Below are positions 1,622 through 44,503 of a stretch of DNA of 64,000 bases, in pieces. Every line of letters begins with the position of its first letter. The stretch's first letter is position 1. The notes beneath the pieces were generated by a model. The model ran no database searches. It saw only the letters and a program-made list of their open reading frames with translations, and was not told where the DNA came from. Location of the stretch: the sequence record NC_049383.1; one strand, given 5' to 3'. The position numbers and the translations under genes were made by a program.

Positions 1622-2395
1622 ATGAATAAAGATTTTGAATTTAATGAAAATAACGCAAATTTCGATTCACTAATTCCAAAAGATATAACAGGGCATTCAA
1701 TTTATGAAGGTGGTAGCCTACAAGGTCTTAGTGAGTATAAAGAATTTGGCGTTGAGGAACAAAAGACGAAAATAGAAAAAGAAGCTAAAGACCTAGTTAA
1801 ATCATTACTAGGCGTTTACTTCGATGTTGACCTAATCAATAATGACGACCATTTAAAAGCAATTCAAGCTGTTGAAACATCAAACCTTTTAGGTTTATTG
1901 GAGTCAGCACGATATGCACAACACGCTGTATCAACATTGATGTTGAAAATAGATGCAGGTATGCACGCTGATATACAGATATATAGTATATTAATAGAGC
2001 TTCAAAAGAGTGCTTTGGATATCCAAATGAAAGTTGCTCAGTATTCTAGAACACTTTCACCTTATTTAAGGTCACTAAAAGAAGATATCGAAGAAGCAGG
2101 AAATACGACTATAAATGTTTTGAGTCGTGTTGAAACTGATGATGTTAGTAAAAAGTTGGATGGTGGTATTGAAGGTGATTCAAAACAAATAGGTGAAAAA
2201 GCATTTAGAGGTGCTTTAGCAATGAATCAGTACTTCAAAGATATGATGGAAGATATTGAGGAATCAAAGAAGGAAAGGAAAGAAACAAATCAAGCAGAAA
2301 TGAAACAATCAGAAGAAAAGAACACAGAATATATAGATTTCGAAGAGATTTCAGATGAAGATGAACCTGATGGATATTTAGATGAAGAAGAATAA
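1622..2395 (+). CDS. Hypothetical protein, possibly terminase small subunit (gp16-like)
   Basis: Helical core and acidic tail loosely match the gp16 layout; follows a neck gene as in T4 order. Weak. Confidence 0.35.
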   Translation: MNKDFEFNENNANFDSLIPKDITGHSIYEGGSLQGLSEYKEFGVEEQKTKIEKEAKDLVKSLLGVYFDVDLINNDDHLKAIQAVETSNLLGLLESARYAQHAVSTLMLKIDAGMHADIQIYSILIELQKSALDIQMKVAQYSRTLSPYLRSLKEDIEEAGNTTINVLSRVETDDVSKKLDGGIEGDSKQIGEKAFRGALAMNQYFKDMMEDIEESKKERKETNQAEMKQSEEKNTEYIDFEEISDEDEPDGYLDEEE

Positions 2396-2404
2396 AAAGA
2401 ACCA

Positions 2405-2671
2405 CTAAAATAGTGGTTCTTTTTCTTTTTTATGTGTTTCGACCTCAACAGTCATTCCTTTTTGTTTATAATCAAGATTGAAAAACTCTTTTACTTCATC
2501 CAATCTAAAATCTACTGAAACATCATCTATACCATTTACAACCATAGATACTGTGACTCTATTTAGGTGTATTTCTTTTACATTCACATACTTATCGACA
2601 TATCTAGGATATAATCTTTTTAAAACTTCATCTTTTAATTTTACTGCTAGGTTTAATTTTGTTCTTTTCAT
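2405..2671 (-). CDS. Hypothetical protein
   Basis: 88-aa ORF, last gene of a minus-strand block (4297 to 2405). Confidence 0.6.
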   Translation of the reverse strand: MKRTKLNLAVKLKDEVLKRLYPRYVDKYVNVKEIHLNRVTVSMVVNGIDDVSVDFRLDEVKEFFNLDYKQKGMTVEVETHKKEKEPLF

Positions 2672-2727
2672 TTTATTAAATTTGATATTTCAAATCTATT
2701 AAATAAAAACGAAACCACCAAAACATT

Positions 2728-3420
2728 TTATGAAATTTTTCCAACACCTAAAGATGTTGCAACACTACTACTTTTTAAAATGGTTTCAAAAGCGGGTGCA
2801 AGTCTATCACCAATCAATGAAAATGGTGTAACAAATCGATTTATTGATATTTCATAAGTTTGTTCTAAACTCATATTTTTAGCACTTGGTTCAGGTCTTA
2901 CTAACTCTGAAAATGCCTCATAAAAAGTCTCCCTAAATATATTCTCAACATTCACATAAACATTAGTGGATGAAACTGATATAAAACCACCATTTATCAA
3001 CGATGCTGAAACAAATTTTGAAAATGTTTCTATAAAATTACTCATTAACGTATAATTCCCTTTTTCAAATGTATTAGGAACACCCAATAATCTATTATTC
3101 ATTATATAAATTAAATCAATAGTTAATCCACCTATTAATTGATTTGCTAAACCTTGCGCATTAAATGGTAATGATTTTGTAGCACCATTAGATGTTGTGA
3201 CCACACCTGTTTGTGTATATGATAATAGCTCATTAGAAAAATCATTCGAAAATTTAACAAATTCGTTAGCAAACCCATTTGATGAAGCATTAGAAATATC
3301 ACTAACTGATGAATTTTTAAGAGAAACTTTAGGTGAGAAGTATGAACTAATCGCATTTTTAGATGCTGTTTCAAAAATGCTATTCAACGAAGCTCTAAAA
3401 CCTTGTGTGTTTAATGCCAT
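2728..3420 (-). CDS. Hypothetical protein (Ser/Asn-rich, possibly virion)
   Basis: 230-aa ORF tightly packed in the minus-strand block. Confidence 0.7.
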   Translation of the reverse strand: MALNTQGFRASLNSIFETASKNAISSYFSPKVSLKNSSVSDISNASSNGFANEFVKFSNDFSNELLSYTQTGVVTTSNGATKSLPFNAQGLANQLIGGLTIDLIYIMNNRLLGVPNTFEKGNYTLMSNFIETFSKFVSASLINGGFISVSSTNVYVNVENIFRETFYEAFSELVRPEPSAKNMSLEQTYEISINRFVTPFSLIGDRLAPAFETILKSSSVATSLGVGKIS

Positions 3421-3423
3421 ACC

Positions 3424-4020
3424 TTAAAATTTTAAAAATGAAGGAAATAACTCATTACCAATAACTCGTATTCCACTATTCTCTAAATGTTTCATATAAT
3501 CTTTCTCAGTCCTTCCAAACATATTATTGAACCTACTTTCAACAACTTCGGGCATTAAGAAATAATACACTAAATCAGTTTTCGTATATCCTGATTTAAT
3601 ATAGTCCGCATATTCCTGAATATGGAAATTAAATGTTGGTGTTGAGTATATAATTAAATTACTCTGTTCAAGCACACTATTTGAAAGATTTTGTAAATAT
3701 TCGTGGAAGTAAATTTTTCTATTACTCAATAACTGATTAATGATGAAAAGTTCATCGATAAAAATATCAACCTTTTTATACTTATTATCTATCATAAATT
3801 TTTCACCACCTCTTGCGAAATTATGGTCAGCTAATTGTTCAGCACCTTTAATAATACATTTTCTCATACCACCTCTTCGAATAACATCTTCGAATTTTTT
3901 AACAGAAGCTCTATTATAAGTGATAATTAGACAAGCATCAGCAGTACTATTATTAACACCTTCAATAATAGATGTTGTTTTACCCACTTGTCTTTCGACA
4001 ATATAATGTTTAATATTCAT
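3424..4020 (-). CDS. Small P-loop NTPase-like protein
   Basis: ERQVGKTT (Walker A-like, terminase style) and IFIDE (Walker B-like). Confidence 0.45.
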   Translation of the reverse strand: MNIKHYIVERQVGKTTSIIEGVNNSTADACLIITYNRASVKKFEDVIRRGGMRKCIIKGAEQLADHNFARGGEKFMIDNKYKKVDIFIDELFIINQLLSNRKIYFHEYLQNLSNSVLEQSNLIIYSTPTFNFHIQEYADYIKSGYTKTDLVYYFLMPEVVESRFNNMFGRTEKDYMKHLENSGIRVIGNELFPSFLKF

Positions 4021-18490: not shown

Positions 18491-19902
18491 TGAGTGATGT
18501 TTTAGATATAGCTTTCAAGGCATTAGCTATTGATGAACATTTAATTACAACAAAAGGAAATTCGCCTGACCTCGCACCTGATTTATTTGATGCGAGGGTG
18601 GCGATTGAAAAAACATTTGTTGATTTATGTGAGCGTTTAGATAATGTTGATGAAATAAAGGATGATAAAAAGGCTTTAGAGATTTTGTATGATGATTTAC
18701 AGAATGCATCTATCTTTTATGATGCTACACAGTTATCCGCAAAAACTCTTGCAAATTCAATGTATGGATATGTTGGTGCGCCATTTTCTAGATACTATAA
18801 AAAGTGTGTTGCCGCTGACATTACAGCCGAAGGACGTAACGCTACAAAGATGGCAGATGTAAGAACCACTCAATATTTTGAATCACCTAAAGGATGGGCT
18901 AGTGAGACTGAATATTTCGAAAAGATTAAAGTTGAATTTGCTGATATTATTAATGTTGATAAGTTGACACCTGTAAAGGCATCTAACGGATTGGGTATTT
19001 ATGGTGATACGGATTCTGTATTCTTTATCATGAAGCCTATTTTGGATAGCTTGGGTGTTAAACCTGATGCTGATAGTTATCGTTGTACTGAATTATGTGT
19101 TAGTATAATTATGAATCCTGTTGATAAGATACATAAGGAGTTATTTAGAAGATATGCTGAGAATAGGAATTGTAAGAATTTACAAGTATTTGAATTAGAG
19201 GCTATTTTAAGGCGAACTATTCACCTTGCAAAGAAAAAGTATATTGGTTCGTATTTTTGGAAGGATGGTAAATTTTTAATTCCTAAAGATTTTGATTCGA
19301 TACCGAATGCTTATAAGAGTATTAAGTTAAAATCTACAGGTTTAGAGCTTGCCCAAAAATCGACACCAGTAATTATCAAGGAATATCTTAAAAAGTATGT
19401 TTATTTGATGTTGTCTAGTAAACAGGTTTCTGATGAGTTTTACTTTAAGATGGCTTACGCAATGACTAAAAGTTTTTCTGATATGCATATTGATGATTAT
19501 TCTAAAGCTAGGGCGTTGGGTACATTTAACAAGTATCATGATATAAAACCTAATGGTCAATATATAAAAACTGGTGGTGATAAAGTTATGGGTGCTTGTG
19601 TTCGTTATAATAATGAAGTGATAAATCACGGTTTAGAATCAAAATATCCGATGATTGCGCAAGGTTCAAGGGTTAAGTTTTATGAAGATATTAATCAACA
19701 AACATTTGCATATCCAATTGATGATAATTGTTCTTTTCCCGAAGAATTTGCACCACCACCACACATAAGGTTGAATTTGGAAAAGATGTTATTTAAACCA
19801 TTAGAAAGGATTATGTGTAAGGTTACCAATGCAGATTTGAGTATGTTGGGTTCACAACATTATCAAGTAACTAAATCTATTTTCAAGAAGAAAAAGTTAT
19901 AA
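18490..19902 (+). CDS. Family-B DNA polymerase, C-terminal subunit (gp43B-like)
   Basis: Motif B KTLANSMYG, motif C YGDTDS, KKKY and KSTGLE. Confidence 0.9.
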   Translation: MSDVLDIAFKALAIDEHLITTKGNSPDLAPDLFDARVAIEKTFVDLCERLDNVDEIKDDKKALEILYDDLQNASIFYDATQLSAKTLANSMYGYVGAPFSRYYKKCVAADITAEGRNATKMADVRTTQYFESPKGWASETEYFEKIKVEFADIINVDKLTPVKASNGLGIYGDTDSVFFIMKPILDSLGVKPDADSYRCTELCVSIIMNPVDKIHKELFRRYAENRNCKNLQVFELEAILRRTIHLAKKKYIGSYFWKDGKFLIPKDFDSIPNAYKSIKLKSTGLELAQKSTPVIIKEYLKKYVYLMLSSKQVSDEFYFKMAYAMTKSFSDMHIDDYSKARALGTFNKYHDIKPNGQYIKTGGDKVMGACVRYNNEVINHGLESKYPMIAQGSRVKFYEDINQQTFAYPIDDNCSFPEEFAPPPHIRLNLEKMLFKPLERIMCKVTNADLSMLGSQHYQVTKSIFKKKKL

Positions 19903-22876: not shown

Positions 22877-22903
22877 AAAAGGGTGTTTTTATAACACCCT
22901 TTT
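22877..22903 (+). terminator. Intrinsic terminator
   Basis: aaaagggtgtt/aacaccctttt plus T-run. Confidence 0.75.
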
Positions 22904-22922
22904 TTAATAACATATACAAAGA

Positions 22923-24308
22923 ATGAAAGTAACAGTTTATAAAGGTGGTGAATTACATAAAGTTAATGAATCTATCGAAAATGTTGAATTATTACAACAA
23001 AAATTGGTAAAAGAAGGTTGGACTCAAAATGAAAATGAGTTTACTTTAGGTGAAAATAAAATGGTTTTTGAATCAGTTGATGAAAAAGCACCGAAGTATG
23101 ACATGAAAGAAGTTCAGTCAAAATTTGGTAAGAAATTAACTACTCTTTTAGGTGATGTTTCTTATCAAGTTGGTCAAAAGAAACCAAGTACTACGGAATT
23201 ATATAGTACTAAGATTATTAACTCTTTTAAGGAGAAAAGAAATTCTAAAAATAATCCAAGGATTAAAAAAGAATATACAAAGTTCATTGAGTATTTAATG
23301 GATTTACACGAAGAGTGGTTTGGAACTTATTTAGGTGTTAGAAAGAATGTTTCAGAGGGATTAGATGTTAATAGTTTAGAAGCGGGTACAACATTGATTT
23401 ACGAGAATGAAGGTATTACTACTTATTTCCATATTAAAGAATTAGGTAATTTAAGGGCTGTTGGGAACATTTTAAATGAAAATGGTATGACAGTACTTAA
23501 AAATGTTGAAGTTCCATATACGATACTTGAAAAGTATTCTGAGAAGTATAGTTTAACAGAAAGTTTAGACTCTAAGTATTCAGATACTCTTTTACCAAAA
23601 ATTAAAGTAGGTAATAAAATCTCATTAGGTGGTGGTGGTGACAATAAAATGAAGGTTACTAACATCAACACTATGAAAAAGCGTTTAGAGGGTGAGTTTA
23701 TTGATAGTAATGATAAGGTTCGTTCTAATATCACAATTCCATTTTCATATTTCGCTAATCCACATTATAACAAAAACTATAAAATTGTTGAGAGTGAAGA
23801 TTTTGTTGATGTTTATTTTGTAAAGGAAAATAACACATTAAAAGTTGGTGAAGAGGTTTTTGAATTTGATACAATGGGTTCTATTAATGTTAGAGGTGTT
23901 GAAATGCAATTAACTGAAAATGTTGAAGACCTTTTAGAGTGTATGAATGATGTTTTTGCTGAAAGTTTCCGTTTTGGAAATGTTGAGTCTATGGATGATA
24001 TGAAATTATATTCTCGTGGATTAAATCATGGATTAAGACGTGATAGAGAAAGTATTAGAATAATTGAAGATAATAAGAATGCAACATCTTTTTTAGCTGA
24101 GTGGTTGGTTTTAGATACAAGGGATGAGGTTTTACAATTCCCGAAGATTTTACCACACTTAAAGGTAATTGAAGGTATGTTAACAAAAGCAAATGATAAA
24201 ACAAGTTTAGGTAAGATGAAAGTTCTTTTAGAAGAGGTTTTCTTACAACCTATTGATGAACAGGACTTTATGAATGTTGTTGATAAATATTCAAACTTGA
24301 ATTTATAA
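22923..24308 (+). CDS. Hypothetical internal head protein (modular, xES sites)
   Basis: VNES, VFES, VSEG, LTES, IVES, LTEN and FAES punctuate the protein. Confidence 0.45.
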   Translation: MKVTVYKGGELHKVNESIENVELLQQKLVKEGWTQNENEFTLGENKMVFESVDEKAPKYDMKEVQSKFGKKLTTLLGDVSYQVGQKKPSTTELYSTKIINSFKEKRNSKNNPRIKKEYTKFIEYLMDLHEEWFGTYLGVRKNVSEGLDVNSLEAGTTLIYENEGITTYFHIKELGNLRAVGNILNENGMTVLKNVEVPYTILEKYSEKYSLTESLDSKYSDTLLPKIKVGNKISLGGGGDNKMKVTNINTMKKRLEGEFIDSNDKVRSNITIPFSYFANPHYNKNYKIVESEDFVDVYFVKENNTLKVGEEVFEFDTMGSINVRGVEMQLTENVEDLLECMNDVFAESFRFGNVESMDDMKLYSRGLNHGLRRDRESIRIIEDNKNATSFLAEWLVLDTRDEVLQFPKILPHLKVIEGMLTKANDKTSLGKMKVLLEEVFLQPIDEQDFMNVVDKYSNLNL

Positions 24309-42881: not shown

Positions 42882-43241
42882 ATGAACAAAAATAAATCAA
42901 TACTTGAATCTTTCAAAACTAGATTCAAAAACGAAATCGAAAAGTTAGATATTAAGATGTTAAACGAGTTGAAAGAACCTACTTACATCTATACTTTAAA
43001 GGATATGGAAAATAGAAGACAAAAATTATATTGTCAAGTAGATGTGATTGAGAATCTTTTAAATAATGAAGTACTCTTAGATAACCCAAATAAAACAATA
43101 GATGTATTAAATAATGATATACATCACCTAAAAATAGGTGTTAAACAACATATTCTAAACAAAAGTATGTCTGTCAATACATTTATAGATATGGTGTATC
43201 GAAAAGAGTTTATGATTCAAATGATTAAAATGTTATCATAA
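42882..43241 (+). CDS. Hypothetical protein
   Basis: 119 aa; TACATTTG at 42852-42859. Confidence 0.7.
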   Translation: MNKNKSILESFKTRFKNEIEKLDIKMLNELKEPTYIYTLKDMENRRQKLYCQVDVIENLLNNEVLLDNPNKTIDVLNNDIHHLKIGVKQHILNKSMSVNTFIDMVYRKEFMIQMIKMLS

Positions 43242-43304
43242 ATTAGTCTAAAAAATTACAAAAAATATTTTGTTAGTATGATATTATTTTATATCTTTGC
43301 TACT

Positions 43305-43510
43305 CAAATAAAACTGTGGAGTAACCGTCGAGACTTAACCATCCTTCGGAAAAGTTATACACAAAATATATACATAGAAAAATTTAATTGAAATGATTAG
43401 GCGGTGAAATTCCGAAGTTACCATATTTTAGACTTGGTTAAGGAGTAGTTTTAATGGTCGCGAAATTATTATATTAAAGAAACCCATCACACATTTTGAT
43501 GGGTTTCTTT
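43305..43510 (+). ncRNA. Candidate structured small RNA or attenuator leader upstream of thyA
   Basis: Promoter TATCTTTG at 43292-43299; nested stems 43309-15/43447-53, 43334-41/43435-42 and 43344-51/43410-17; 14-bp terminator 43476-43510; no ORF in the track. Confidence 0.55.
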
Positions 43511-43543
43511 TTAAAAAAGAAATAATTAAAAACAGATAAATAT

Positions 43544-44503
43544 ATGAAGCAATATTTAGATATTTTACGCCATGTTAGAGAAAATGGTGATTTAAAAGCT
43601 GATAGAACAGGAGTTGGAACAATTTCTTGTTTTGGGTTACAGATGCAACCTATAGACCTTAGAAAAGGTTTACCAGTTGTGACGACAAAGAAAATACATT
43701 TGCCATCAGTAATTCATGAGTTATTATGGTTCTTTAAAGGTACTGATAAAATCGATTATCTTACTGAAAATAAAGTACGTATATGGAATGAATGGGCTGT
43801 TGACAACTCAATAGGTAATATGTATGGTGTTCAATGGATGAAATGGAAGTGTTCAAACGGTGAAGAGATTAACCAAATTGAAGATATGTTGGAGCTTCTT
43901 AAAACAAATCCTGATTCTAGAAGGAATGTTGTAACTTCATGGAATCCCGAAACTATTCCTGATTCAAAGAAATCATTCAAAGAAAATATCGAGAATGGGA
44001 AGGGTGCTTTAGCAAATTGTCACGGATTTTTCCAAGTTTATACGGCAATTATCCCAACATACGAAAGAATGGAACTTTTCAAAAAAGAATATCCATTAAA
44101 GTATGGAGATATGGTTTATGATAAACTAAGAACTTCCGAATTTGATGAGTATTTAGATAAAGTTGGTTTTCCAAAACGTTATTTGGATATGAAACATTAT
44201 ATCAGAAGTAATGACCTTTTCCTTGGCGCGCCTTTCAATATCACATCATATTGTTTAATGATGGAAATGATTTGTAAAGAGGTTAACATGATTCCTAGAT
44301 TTTATCATCACACTTTCGGTGATGCACATATCTATACTAATCATTTAGAACAAGTTGATTTACAATTAACTAGAGAGCCTAAAAAGCTTCCAACATTGAG
44401 ACTTAATCCGAATGTTAAGCGTGTTGTTGATTTCAGGTTTGAAGATTTTGAAATCATAGGTTATGACCCACACCCTCATATTAAAGGTAAAGTAGCAGTA
44501 TAA
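43544..44503 (+). CDS. thyA: Thymidylate synthase
   Basis: DRTGVGT, ELLWF, YGVQW, DSRR, ANCH, RSND, PFN and GDAHIY motifs. Confidence 0.95.
   Translation: MKQYLDILRHVRENGDLKADRTGVGTISCFGLQMQPIDLRKGLPVVTTKKIHLPSVIHELLWFFKGTDKIDYLTENKVRIWNEWAVDNSIGNMYGVQWMKWKCSNGEEINQIEDMLELLKTNPDSRRNVVTSWNPETIPDSKKSFKENIENGKGALANCHGFFQVYTAIIPTYERMELFKKEYPLKYGDMVYDKLRTSEFDEYLDKVGFPKRYLDMKHYIRSNDLFLGAPFNITSYCLMMEMICKEVNMIPRFYHHTFGDAHIYTNHLEQVDLQLTREPKKLPTLRLNPNVKRVVDFRFEDFEIIGYDPHPHIKGKVAV

Follow-up and report, generated by a model that had tools for sequence, protein, structure and literature searches.

The thymidylate synthase gene (thyA) of Tenacibaculum phage pT24 is preceded by a strong host-type promoter, a stretch of about 170 nt in which no usable open reading frame (ORF) was found, and a strong intrinsic terminator. 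No further promoter motif was recognized between the terminator and thyA, and this layout occurs only once in the phage genome. We propose, with a probability of roughly 45%, that this orphan non-coding promoter-to-terminator unit works as a terminated leader in front of the thyA-nrd genes, which would be fed by read-through. An earlier note on the same DNA had described the same architecture (i.e., a promoter, an ORF-free RNA, a terminator, and no additional promoter before thyA), and the sequence analysis presented below agrees with it.

Genomic Context of thyA

The DNA analyzed here, termed the window, is a stretch of 64,000 nucleotides corresponding to bases 124001-188000 of the pT24 genome (NC_049383 / LC168164); the positions given below are those of the window unless the genome is specified. 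pT24 is a jumbo myovirus with a genome of 234,670 bp and 28.7% GC, and its host belongs to Flavobacteriaceae. Transcription was not discussed in the genome announcement of this phage (PMC5502841).

thyA (43544-44503, + strand) is annotated as encoding a thymidylate synthase of 319 amino acids (aa), which matched Pfam PF00303 with an E-value of 9e-88, and is the first gene in the order thyA-gp192-nrdB-nrdA, all on the + strand. The upstream neighbor, gp190 (42882-43241, + strand), is annotated as an orphan hypothetical protein of 119 aa, for which we found no Pfam match, only a marginal PHROG match, and no relative in IMG/VR or in phage PTm1. The sequence upstream of gp190 contains a -7 box of its own, TACATTTG, which ends 22 nt 5' of the gp190 ATG, and the first terminator 3' of gp190 is the one at 43476. 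The flanking genes gp189, gp190, and gp192 had no relatives in IMG/VR and are orphans or nearly so. The spacer between gp190 and thyA (43242-43543) is 302 nt long and ranks within the 17 longest of the approximately 270 inter-ORF gaps of pT24, the median of which is 24 nt.

Promoter and Terminator in Front of thyA

Promoters recognized by the Bacteroidetes sigma-A comprise a -7 box of the form TAnnTTTG and a TTTG located 19-21 nt upstream. Both pattern match and matrix score detected such a promoter at 43269-43299 on the + strand (TTTG-N19-TATCTTTG), in which the -33 TTTG at 43269-43272 is separated by exactly 19 nt from the -7 box TATCTTTG at 43292-43299. Transcription would start at around 43305-43307, judging from the position of the -7 box. 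The window contains 16 occurrences of the composite of TTTG and the -7 motif, while 5.5 are expected. The scoring matrix was trained on 48 canonical pT24 sites, namely TAnnTTTG sequences with a called ATG 15-40 nt past their end. The 43292 site was outside the training set, and the 48 training sites themselves were scored by a leave-one-out procedure. With its 30.2 bits, the promoter at 43292 would take third place among the 48 canonical promoters, and it was the sole non-canonical site in the entire genome with at least this score, while the maximum scores in five Markov-shuffled pT24 genomes ranged from 12.9 to 18.9 bits. Thus, the -7 box noticed earlier is accompanied by a -33 element and by a score that none of the shuffled genomes approached.

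A stable, GC-containing hairpin directly followed by a U-tract, the hallmark of an intrinsic terminator, was found at 43476-43515 on the + strand. It consists of a 14-bp stem (43476-43489 paired with 43497-43510), a 7-nt loop, and a U-rich 3' arm and tail (UUUCUUUUU); the arms of the stem are AAAGAAACCCATCA and TGATGGGTTTCTTT, and 5 of the 14 pairs are GC. The terminator alone folds at -18.4 kcal/mol with a folding z-score of -7.3 and a stem pair probability of approximately 1.0. The promoter and terminator before thyA far exceed chance expectation. The ATG of thyA at 43544 lies 33 nt 3' of the terminator stem, and our survey of upstream motifs detected in this interval no -7 box of the host type and no copy of the phage motif AAAC(A/T)ATAAATA (see below). 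The 14-bp stem, the distance of 33 nt, and the lack of a further TAnnTTTG before thyA had all been claimed in the earlier note and were reproduced here.

The order of the elements in front of thyA is the reverse of what is usual in pT24. A typical module of this genome comprises a stop codon, a terminator within 0-40 nt, a host-type promoter, 17-35 nt, and an ATG, whereas the elements preceding thyA are a promoter, 176 nt, a terminator, 33 nt, and the ATG. In a systematic scan of the genome, the thyA leader was the only promoter-to-terminator unit that holds no ORF; two other such units hold genes of 88 aa and 92 aa.

The Stretch Between the Promoter and Terminator is Non-coding

The predicted non-coding transcript (43306-43515, + strand) would run from the putative start site through the U-tract and be approximately 205-210 nt long. 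On the + strand, no ORF of at least 20 aa begins past the start site, and the longest ATG-initiated ORF between the promoter and terminator has 7 codons. An ORF of 37 aa at 43278-43391 was dismissed as a gene, as it begins within the promoter. All six frames of the leader are rich in stop codons and showed no similarity to the pT24 and PTm1 proteins in tblastn, by which we rejected a coding remnant or a small protein; the assertion that the leader is non-coding was thus sustained. Neither tRNA nor tmRNA was found. Two further candidates were rejected, namely an NrdR box, for which a single match with three mismatches (43258-43273) was not beyond chance, and a replication origin, as the cumulative GC skew turns elsewhere, at approximately 122 kb, and direct repeats are absent.

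The 7-codon ORF encodes MVAKLLY (43454-43477, + strand). Its ATG is preceded at a distance of 8 nt by AAGGAG (43440-43445), and its stop codon shares bases with the beginning of the terminator 5' arm. This mini-ORF is probably not translated. Shine-Dalgarno motifs of any kind were found in only 2 of 270 pT24 genes, and a leader peptide with a Shine-Dalgarno sequence was rejected because the genes of this phage essentially never use such sequences.

The base composition of the leader is uneven. The earlier description of the leader as GC-richer holds for its two flanks (approximately 40% and 39% GC, respectively) but not for the AT-rich centre between them (43353-43398, + strand), of which the GC content is 15% and thus below that of the pT24 intergenic regions (22%). 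The GC content of the whole RNA body is 30.6%, and that of the pT24 coding sequences is 28.7%.

Folding of the Leader

Three nested perfect helices had been recognized in the leader (43309-43453, + strand) by eye, and we found all of them: P1 (43309-43315/43447-43453; 7 bp), P2 (43334-43341/43435-43442; 8 bp), and P3 (43344-43351/43410-43417; 8 bp). Nested perfect helices totalling 23 bp occurred in 0.9% of the 155-nt windows of the genome and in 0.07% of shuffles, by a statistic that was picked after the helices had been seen. At the rate of 0.9%, a few such nested-helix windows are expected in any 64-kb stretch. The fold made of the three helices is doubtful: its energy of -37.5 kcal/mol exceeds that of the minimum-energy fold (-44.0 kcal/mol) by 6.5 kcal/mol, and the pairs of P1, P2, and P3 have probabilities of at most 0.01, at most 0.07, and approximately 0.44, respectively. 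The minimum-energy fold is branched and possesses no closing helix linking the two ends. It includes a competing, imperfect helix of 16 bp, in which 43312-43329 pairs with 43399-43419 (+ strand), and this helix excludes P3.

The full stretch of 216 nt with the terminator yielded a folding z-score of -2.9, but this is due to the terminator, as the z-score of the leader without it was -0.2 to -0.3, i.e., ordinary in comparison with shuffles. Altogether, the leader is structured only weakly above chance.

Two alternative pairings had been suggested in addition to the helices. The sequence pieces concerned are present (gtaac at 43321-43325, gttac at 43417-43421, and aaccatc at 43337-43343), but the nested-model ensemble gave the pairing between gtaac and gttac a probability of 0.00. 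We rejected base-pairing of aaccatc with the terminator 3' arm indirectly, from the stem pair probability of approximately 1.0 and the lack of a competing terminator-free fold. The best structure from which the terminator is removed costs 17.9 kcal/mol. In the nascent RNA, the 5' arm of the terminator remains largely single-stranded (its pairing probability does not exceed 0.44), and neither the P1-P3 fold nor the minimum-energy fold of the leader touches the terminator.

Searches for RNA Families and Homologous Leaders

A comparison of the whole window with Rfam 15 detected no match at the gathering threshold. When the threshold was relaxed to an E-value of 10 or below for 43150-43650, we obtained only chance matches driven by the terminator (E-values of 0.6-7.5, far under the gathering scores), so that the comparison with Rfam recommended in the earlier note assigned the leader to no family. 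Blastn against 50,697 phage records retrieved pT24 itself and a single terminator-like match of 61 nt. The helix pattern was matched 0 times in each of the scanned collections, namely IMG/VR, metagenomes, and GTDB genomes. In BLAST searches of 401 Flavobacteriaceae genomes, the terminator or the AT-rich centre was matched and nothing else; the AT-rich centre is the only part of the leader body that gave chance BLAST matches in other genomes.

The same note had recommended collecting the regions upstream of homologous thyA genes. Relatives of thyA were sampled from IMG/VR (4; at most 54% identity), metagenomes (80), and GTDB (80; at most 48% identity for both), and no similar leader was found upstream of 160 thyA loci by blastn, nhmmer, or a covariance model. 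The covariance model, built on the single sequence, detected nothing in PTm1, in a 269-kb phage of IMG/VR, or elsewhere in pT24.

The only relatives of pT24 are the Tenacibaculum phages PTm1 and PTm5, and no homologue of the leader was found in either of them. In a gene-by-gene comparison with PTm1, the nearest relative, 91 of the 270 pT24 ORFs were matched with a mean amino-acid identity of 37%. In PTm1, thyA abuts the upstream ORF and has no leader. Among promoter-to-terminator units in PTm1, the sole analogue was an unrelated one of approximately 100 nt, and the region at 99210-99345 of that genome comprises, in this order, a host-type promoter, ATG-AAA-TAG, a terminator, and another -7 box. 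PTm1 thyA itself is an open frame of 527 aa (positions 2302-3885 of locus L004; 199563-201146 of the PTm1 genome) with an insertion of approximately 200 aa after around residue 80, which is annotated as an HNH endonuclease in RefSeq, while pT24 thyA is uninterrupted. The insertion may be an in-frame homing endonuclease or intein-like.

Proposed Working of the thyA Leader

From the elements described above, we infer production of the short RNA, read-through into thyA, and control of that read-through as follows. The host RNA polymerase would start at the strong host-type promoter (approximately 43306), traverse the stretch of about 170 nt, and mostly stop at 43476-43515, where an RNA of approximately 205 nt would be released. 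As thyA has no promoter of its own, it would be made only by the polymerases passing the terminator, which could come from the promoter at 43299 or from that of gp190. The read-through may be a simple leak or may depend on a putative antitermination factor of the phage or host; a ligand-sensing RNA switch is not part of this proposal. We thus envisage three transcript species, namely a gp190 mRNA with the 3' end at 43512, a non-coding RNA of approximately 205 nt running from the 43299 promoter to the same terminator as the gp190 mRNA, and a thyA-nrd mRNA generated by read-through only. This map is the simplest one, since gp190 bears its own -7 box, no terminator precedes 43476, and thyA is promoterless. 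We regard a discrete transcript of approximately 205 nt or a terminated leader as the most reasonable reading of the sequence. Several results argue against this proposal: the leader body folds like shuffles, PTm1 thyA has no leader, no homologue was found, and at least one other pT24 gene (at 22923, see below) follows a terminator closely with no recognizable promoter.

The closest parallel in layout is the pR'-tR' region of lambda, in which transcription from a constitutive promoter ends after 194 nt, giving the phage "6S" transcript, until the polymerase becomes terminator-resistant. More generally, promoter-proximal terminated leaders are governed by processive antitermination in the Q, N/nut, and HK022 put systems. 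The thyA leader has the layout of an antitermination leader, i.e., a promoter-proximal terminator with a promoterless operon behind it, and shares with lambda pR'-tR' a strong promoter, approximately 200 nt free of ORFs, and a strong intrinsic terminator; this likeness is one of layout alone and implies no membership in the same class. In contrast to lambda, the genes behind the pT24 terminator are for nucleotide synthesis rather than late genes, and the host is a relative of Flavobacterium with a different type of promoter. No boxA-like sequence was noticed by eye in the thyA leader.

Should the short RNA indeed be produced, very few other candidates for a regulatory RNA or a terminated leader would be on record for the phages of Flavobacteriia, in which, to our knowledge, transcription control is almost unstudied. 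If the proposal is true, pT24 would gate the genes for its own dTMP/dNTP supply at a terminator. The thyA leader is a prediction from a single genome, and it makes a clean and easily tested candidate.

Alternative Interpretations

We consider it unlikely, albeit worth weighing, that the unit is a functionless relic, in which a former cassette of a promoter, small gene, and terminator has lost its frame, the helices are fortuitous, and the promoter merely adds transcription into a leaky terminator. The two pT24 units of similar size that hold genes of 88 aa and 92 aa would be the intact counterparts of such a cassette, the GC content of the RNA body is close to that of coding sequences, its minimum free energy is no better than those of shuffles, and no conservation was found. 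Nevertheless, none of the frames retains any resemblance to the pT24 and PTm1 proteins. In addition, decaying DNA would not be expected to keep an intact promoter and an intact terminator, both of which rank with the best of pT24, and the nested perfect helices belong to the top 0.9% of the genome windows. The same helices, together with the promoter and terminator belonging to the RNA itself, the lack of an ORF, and the GC-richer flanks, would suit a stand-alone, trans-acting phage small RNA (sRNA) of approximately 205 nt, which shares the terminator of gp190, pairs with phage or host mRNAs, and lies before thyA incidentally. Its arrangement recalls DapZ and MicL of enterobacteria, sRNAs derived from 3' untranslated regions that are transcribed from their own promoters and share the terminator of the upstream gene, as the thyA-leader promoter is situated just past the gp190 coding sequence and the intrinsic terminator is shared. 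Unlike DapZ and MicL, the pT24 leader is not conserved and its complementarity to the translation-start regions of pT24 is no better than chance: the best duplex with the 270 start regions amounted to -27.1 kcal/mol, a value equalled by 28% of shuffles (shuffled mean of -26.7 kcal/mol). The leader is a single copy in pT24 and is absent from PTm1, and its folding z-score is ordinary. We find such an sRNA about as doubtful as the relic, or slightly more so.

The remaining readings assign a regulatory activity to the leader RNA or mimicry of a promoter to its fold, and all of them are improbable. The one to which we grant the most, though still a small chance, regards the leader of about 170 nt as a new cis-acting element (a put-like polymerase modifier, a binding site of a phage antiterminator, or a nucleotide/folate sensor) that would time the expression of thyA and ribonucleotide reductase through two mutually exclusive folds. 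A ligand-sensing attenuator of the riboswitch type, in which the metabolite-bound fold of the leader chooses between a terminator and an antiterminator, is very improbable. A promoter, long leader, terminator, and metabolic gene in this order make the classical layout, as in the THF, THF-II, ZTP, and pyr leaders, and the P1-P3 fold and the minimum-energy helix exclude each other. In contrast to those leaders, however, that of pT24 lacks an Rfam match at either threshold, an antiterminator of comparable energy (the terminator-free fold being 17.9 kcal/mol worse), and a counterpart at the 160 thyA homologues, in the 401 Flavobacteriaceae genomes, or at PTm1 thyA, and its folds leave untouched a terminator of which the 5' arm stays largely single-stranded in the nascent RNA. 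The earlier note had offered this mechanism as one of two options, and it drew no support from the searches. Even less probable is attenuation coupled to translation in a pyrBI-like manner, in which a ribosome finishing the 7-codon mini-ORF at 43454-43477 blocks the hairpin and permits read-through. AAGGAG 8 nt before the ATG and the overlap of the stop codon with the terminator arm are what such a mechanism calls for, but Shine-Dalgarno motifs are practically absent from the pT24 genes, and the Flavobacteriia host is likewise not known to rely on them. Moreover, the sequence just before the mini-ORF ATG is T-rich as opposed to the A-rich start sites of pT24, and three other AAGGAG-ATG pairs in the genome precede ORFs of 2-11 codons. 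The other option of the earlier note, a 6S-type decoy of RNA polymerase in which a long rod with a central bubble mimics an open promoter, is the least probable of all. The size is near those of 6S RNAs and the AT-rich centre lies between paired flanks, but the 6S models in Rfam were not matched even at an E-value of 10, the minimum-energy fold is branched rather than a single rod closed from end to end, and no conservation was seen. The lack of support for the riboswitch and 6S readings is a caution to be drawn from this leader. Against these alternatives, a terminated leader fed by read-through remains the interpretation that we prefer.

Other Promoter-like Motifs and Terminators in pT24

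The gene starting at 22923 (region 22877-22925) is located 20 nt past an 11-bp terminator, leaving no room for a promoter. As this gene has no recognizable promoter, terminator read-through may be routine in pT24 and need no special leader. Some terminator stems recur in the genome: the stem core AAACCCATCA...TGATGGGTTT is common to the thyA-leader terminator and that at 195041-195066 of the genome, and the stem AAAAATCCGATTCAA...TTGAATCGGATTTTT occurs twice (genome 86573 and window 48828), with a related third copy at genome 191409.

The motif (C/G)AAAC(A/T)ATAAATA was found within approximately 60 nt, mostly 19-34 nt, before around nine ATGs. In most of these cases, it directly follows an intrinsic terminator and is unaccompanied by a host -7 box. 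Its sites include 8092, 29189, 36910, and 48877 in the window and 189715, 201080 (- strand), 203851 (- strand), and 93028 (- strand) in the genome. The motif resembles the late promoter of T4, TATAAATA. It may serve pT24 as a phage-specific promoter of the middle or late type. An identical 15-mer, GTATATTAGCACTAT, appeared at window 63556 and genome 224057, in both cases 15-16 nt before an ATG and just after a terminator, and may represent a third type of promoter or operator.

Finally, three further high-scoring promoters of the host type were found on the - strand at genome positions 62976, 18840, and 34272 (29.5, 28.2, and 25.8 bits, respectively), none of which is 15-40 nt from a called ATG. 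One of the three is 183 nt from the next gene, and another falls within a gene-free stretch of 1179 nt (18646-19824). These promoters may serve unannotated small genes or RNAs.
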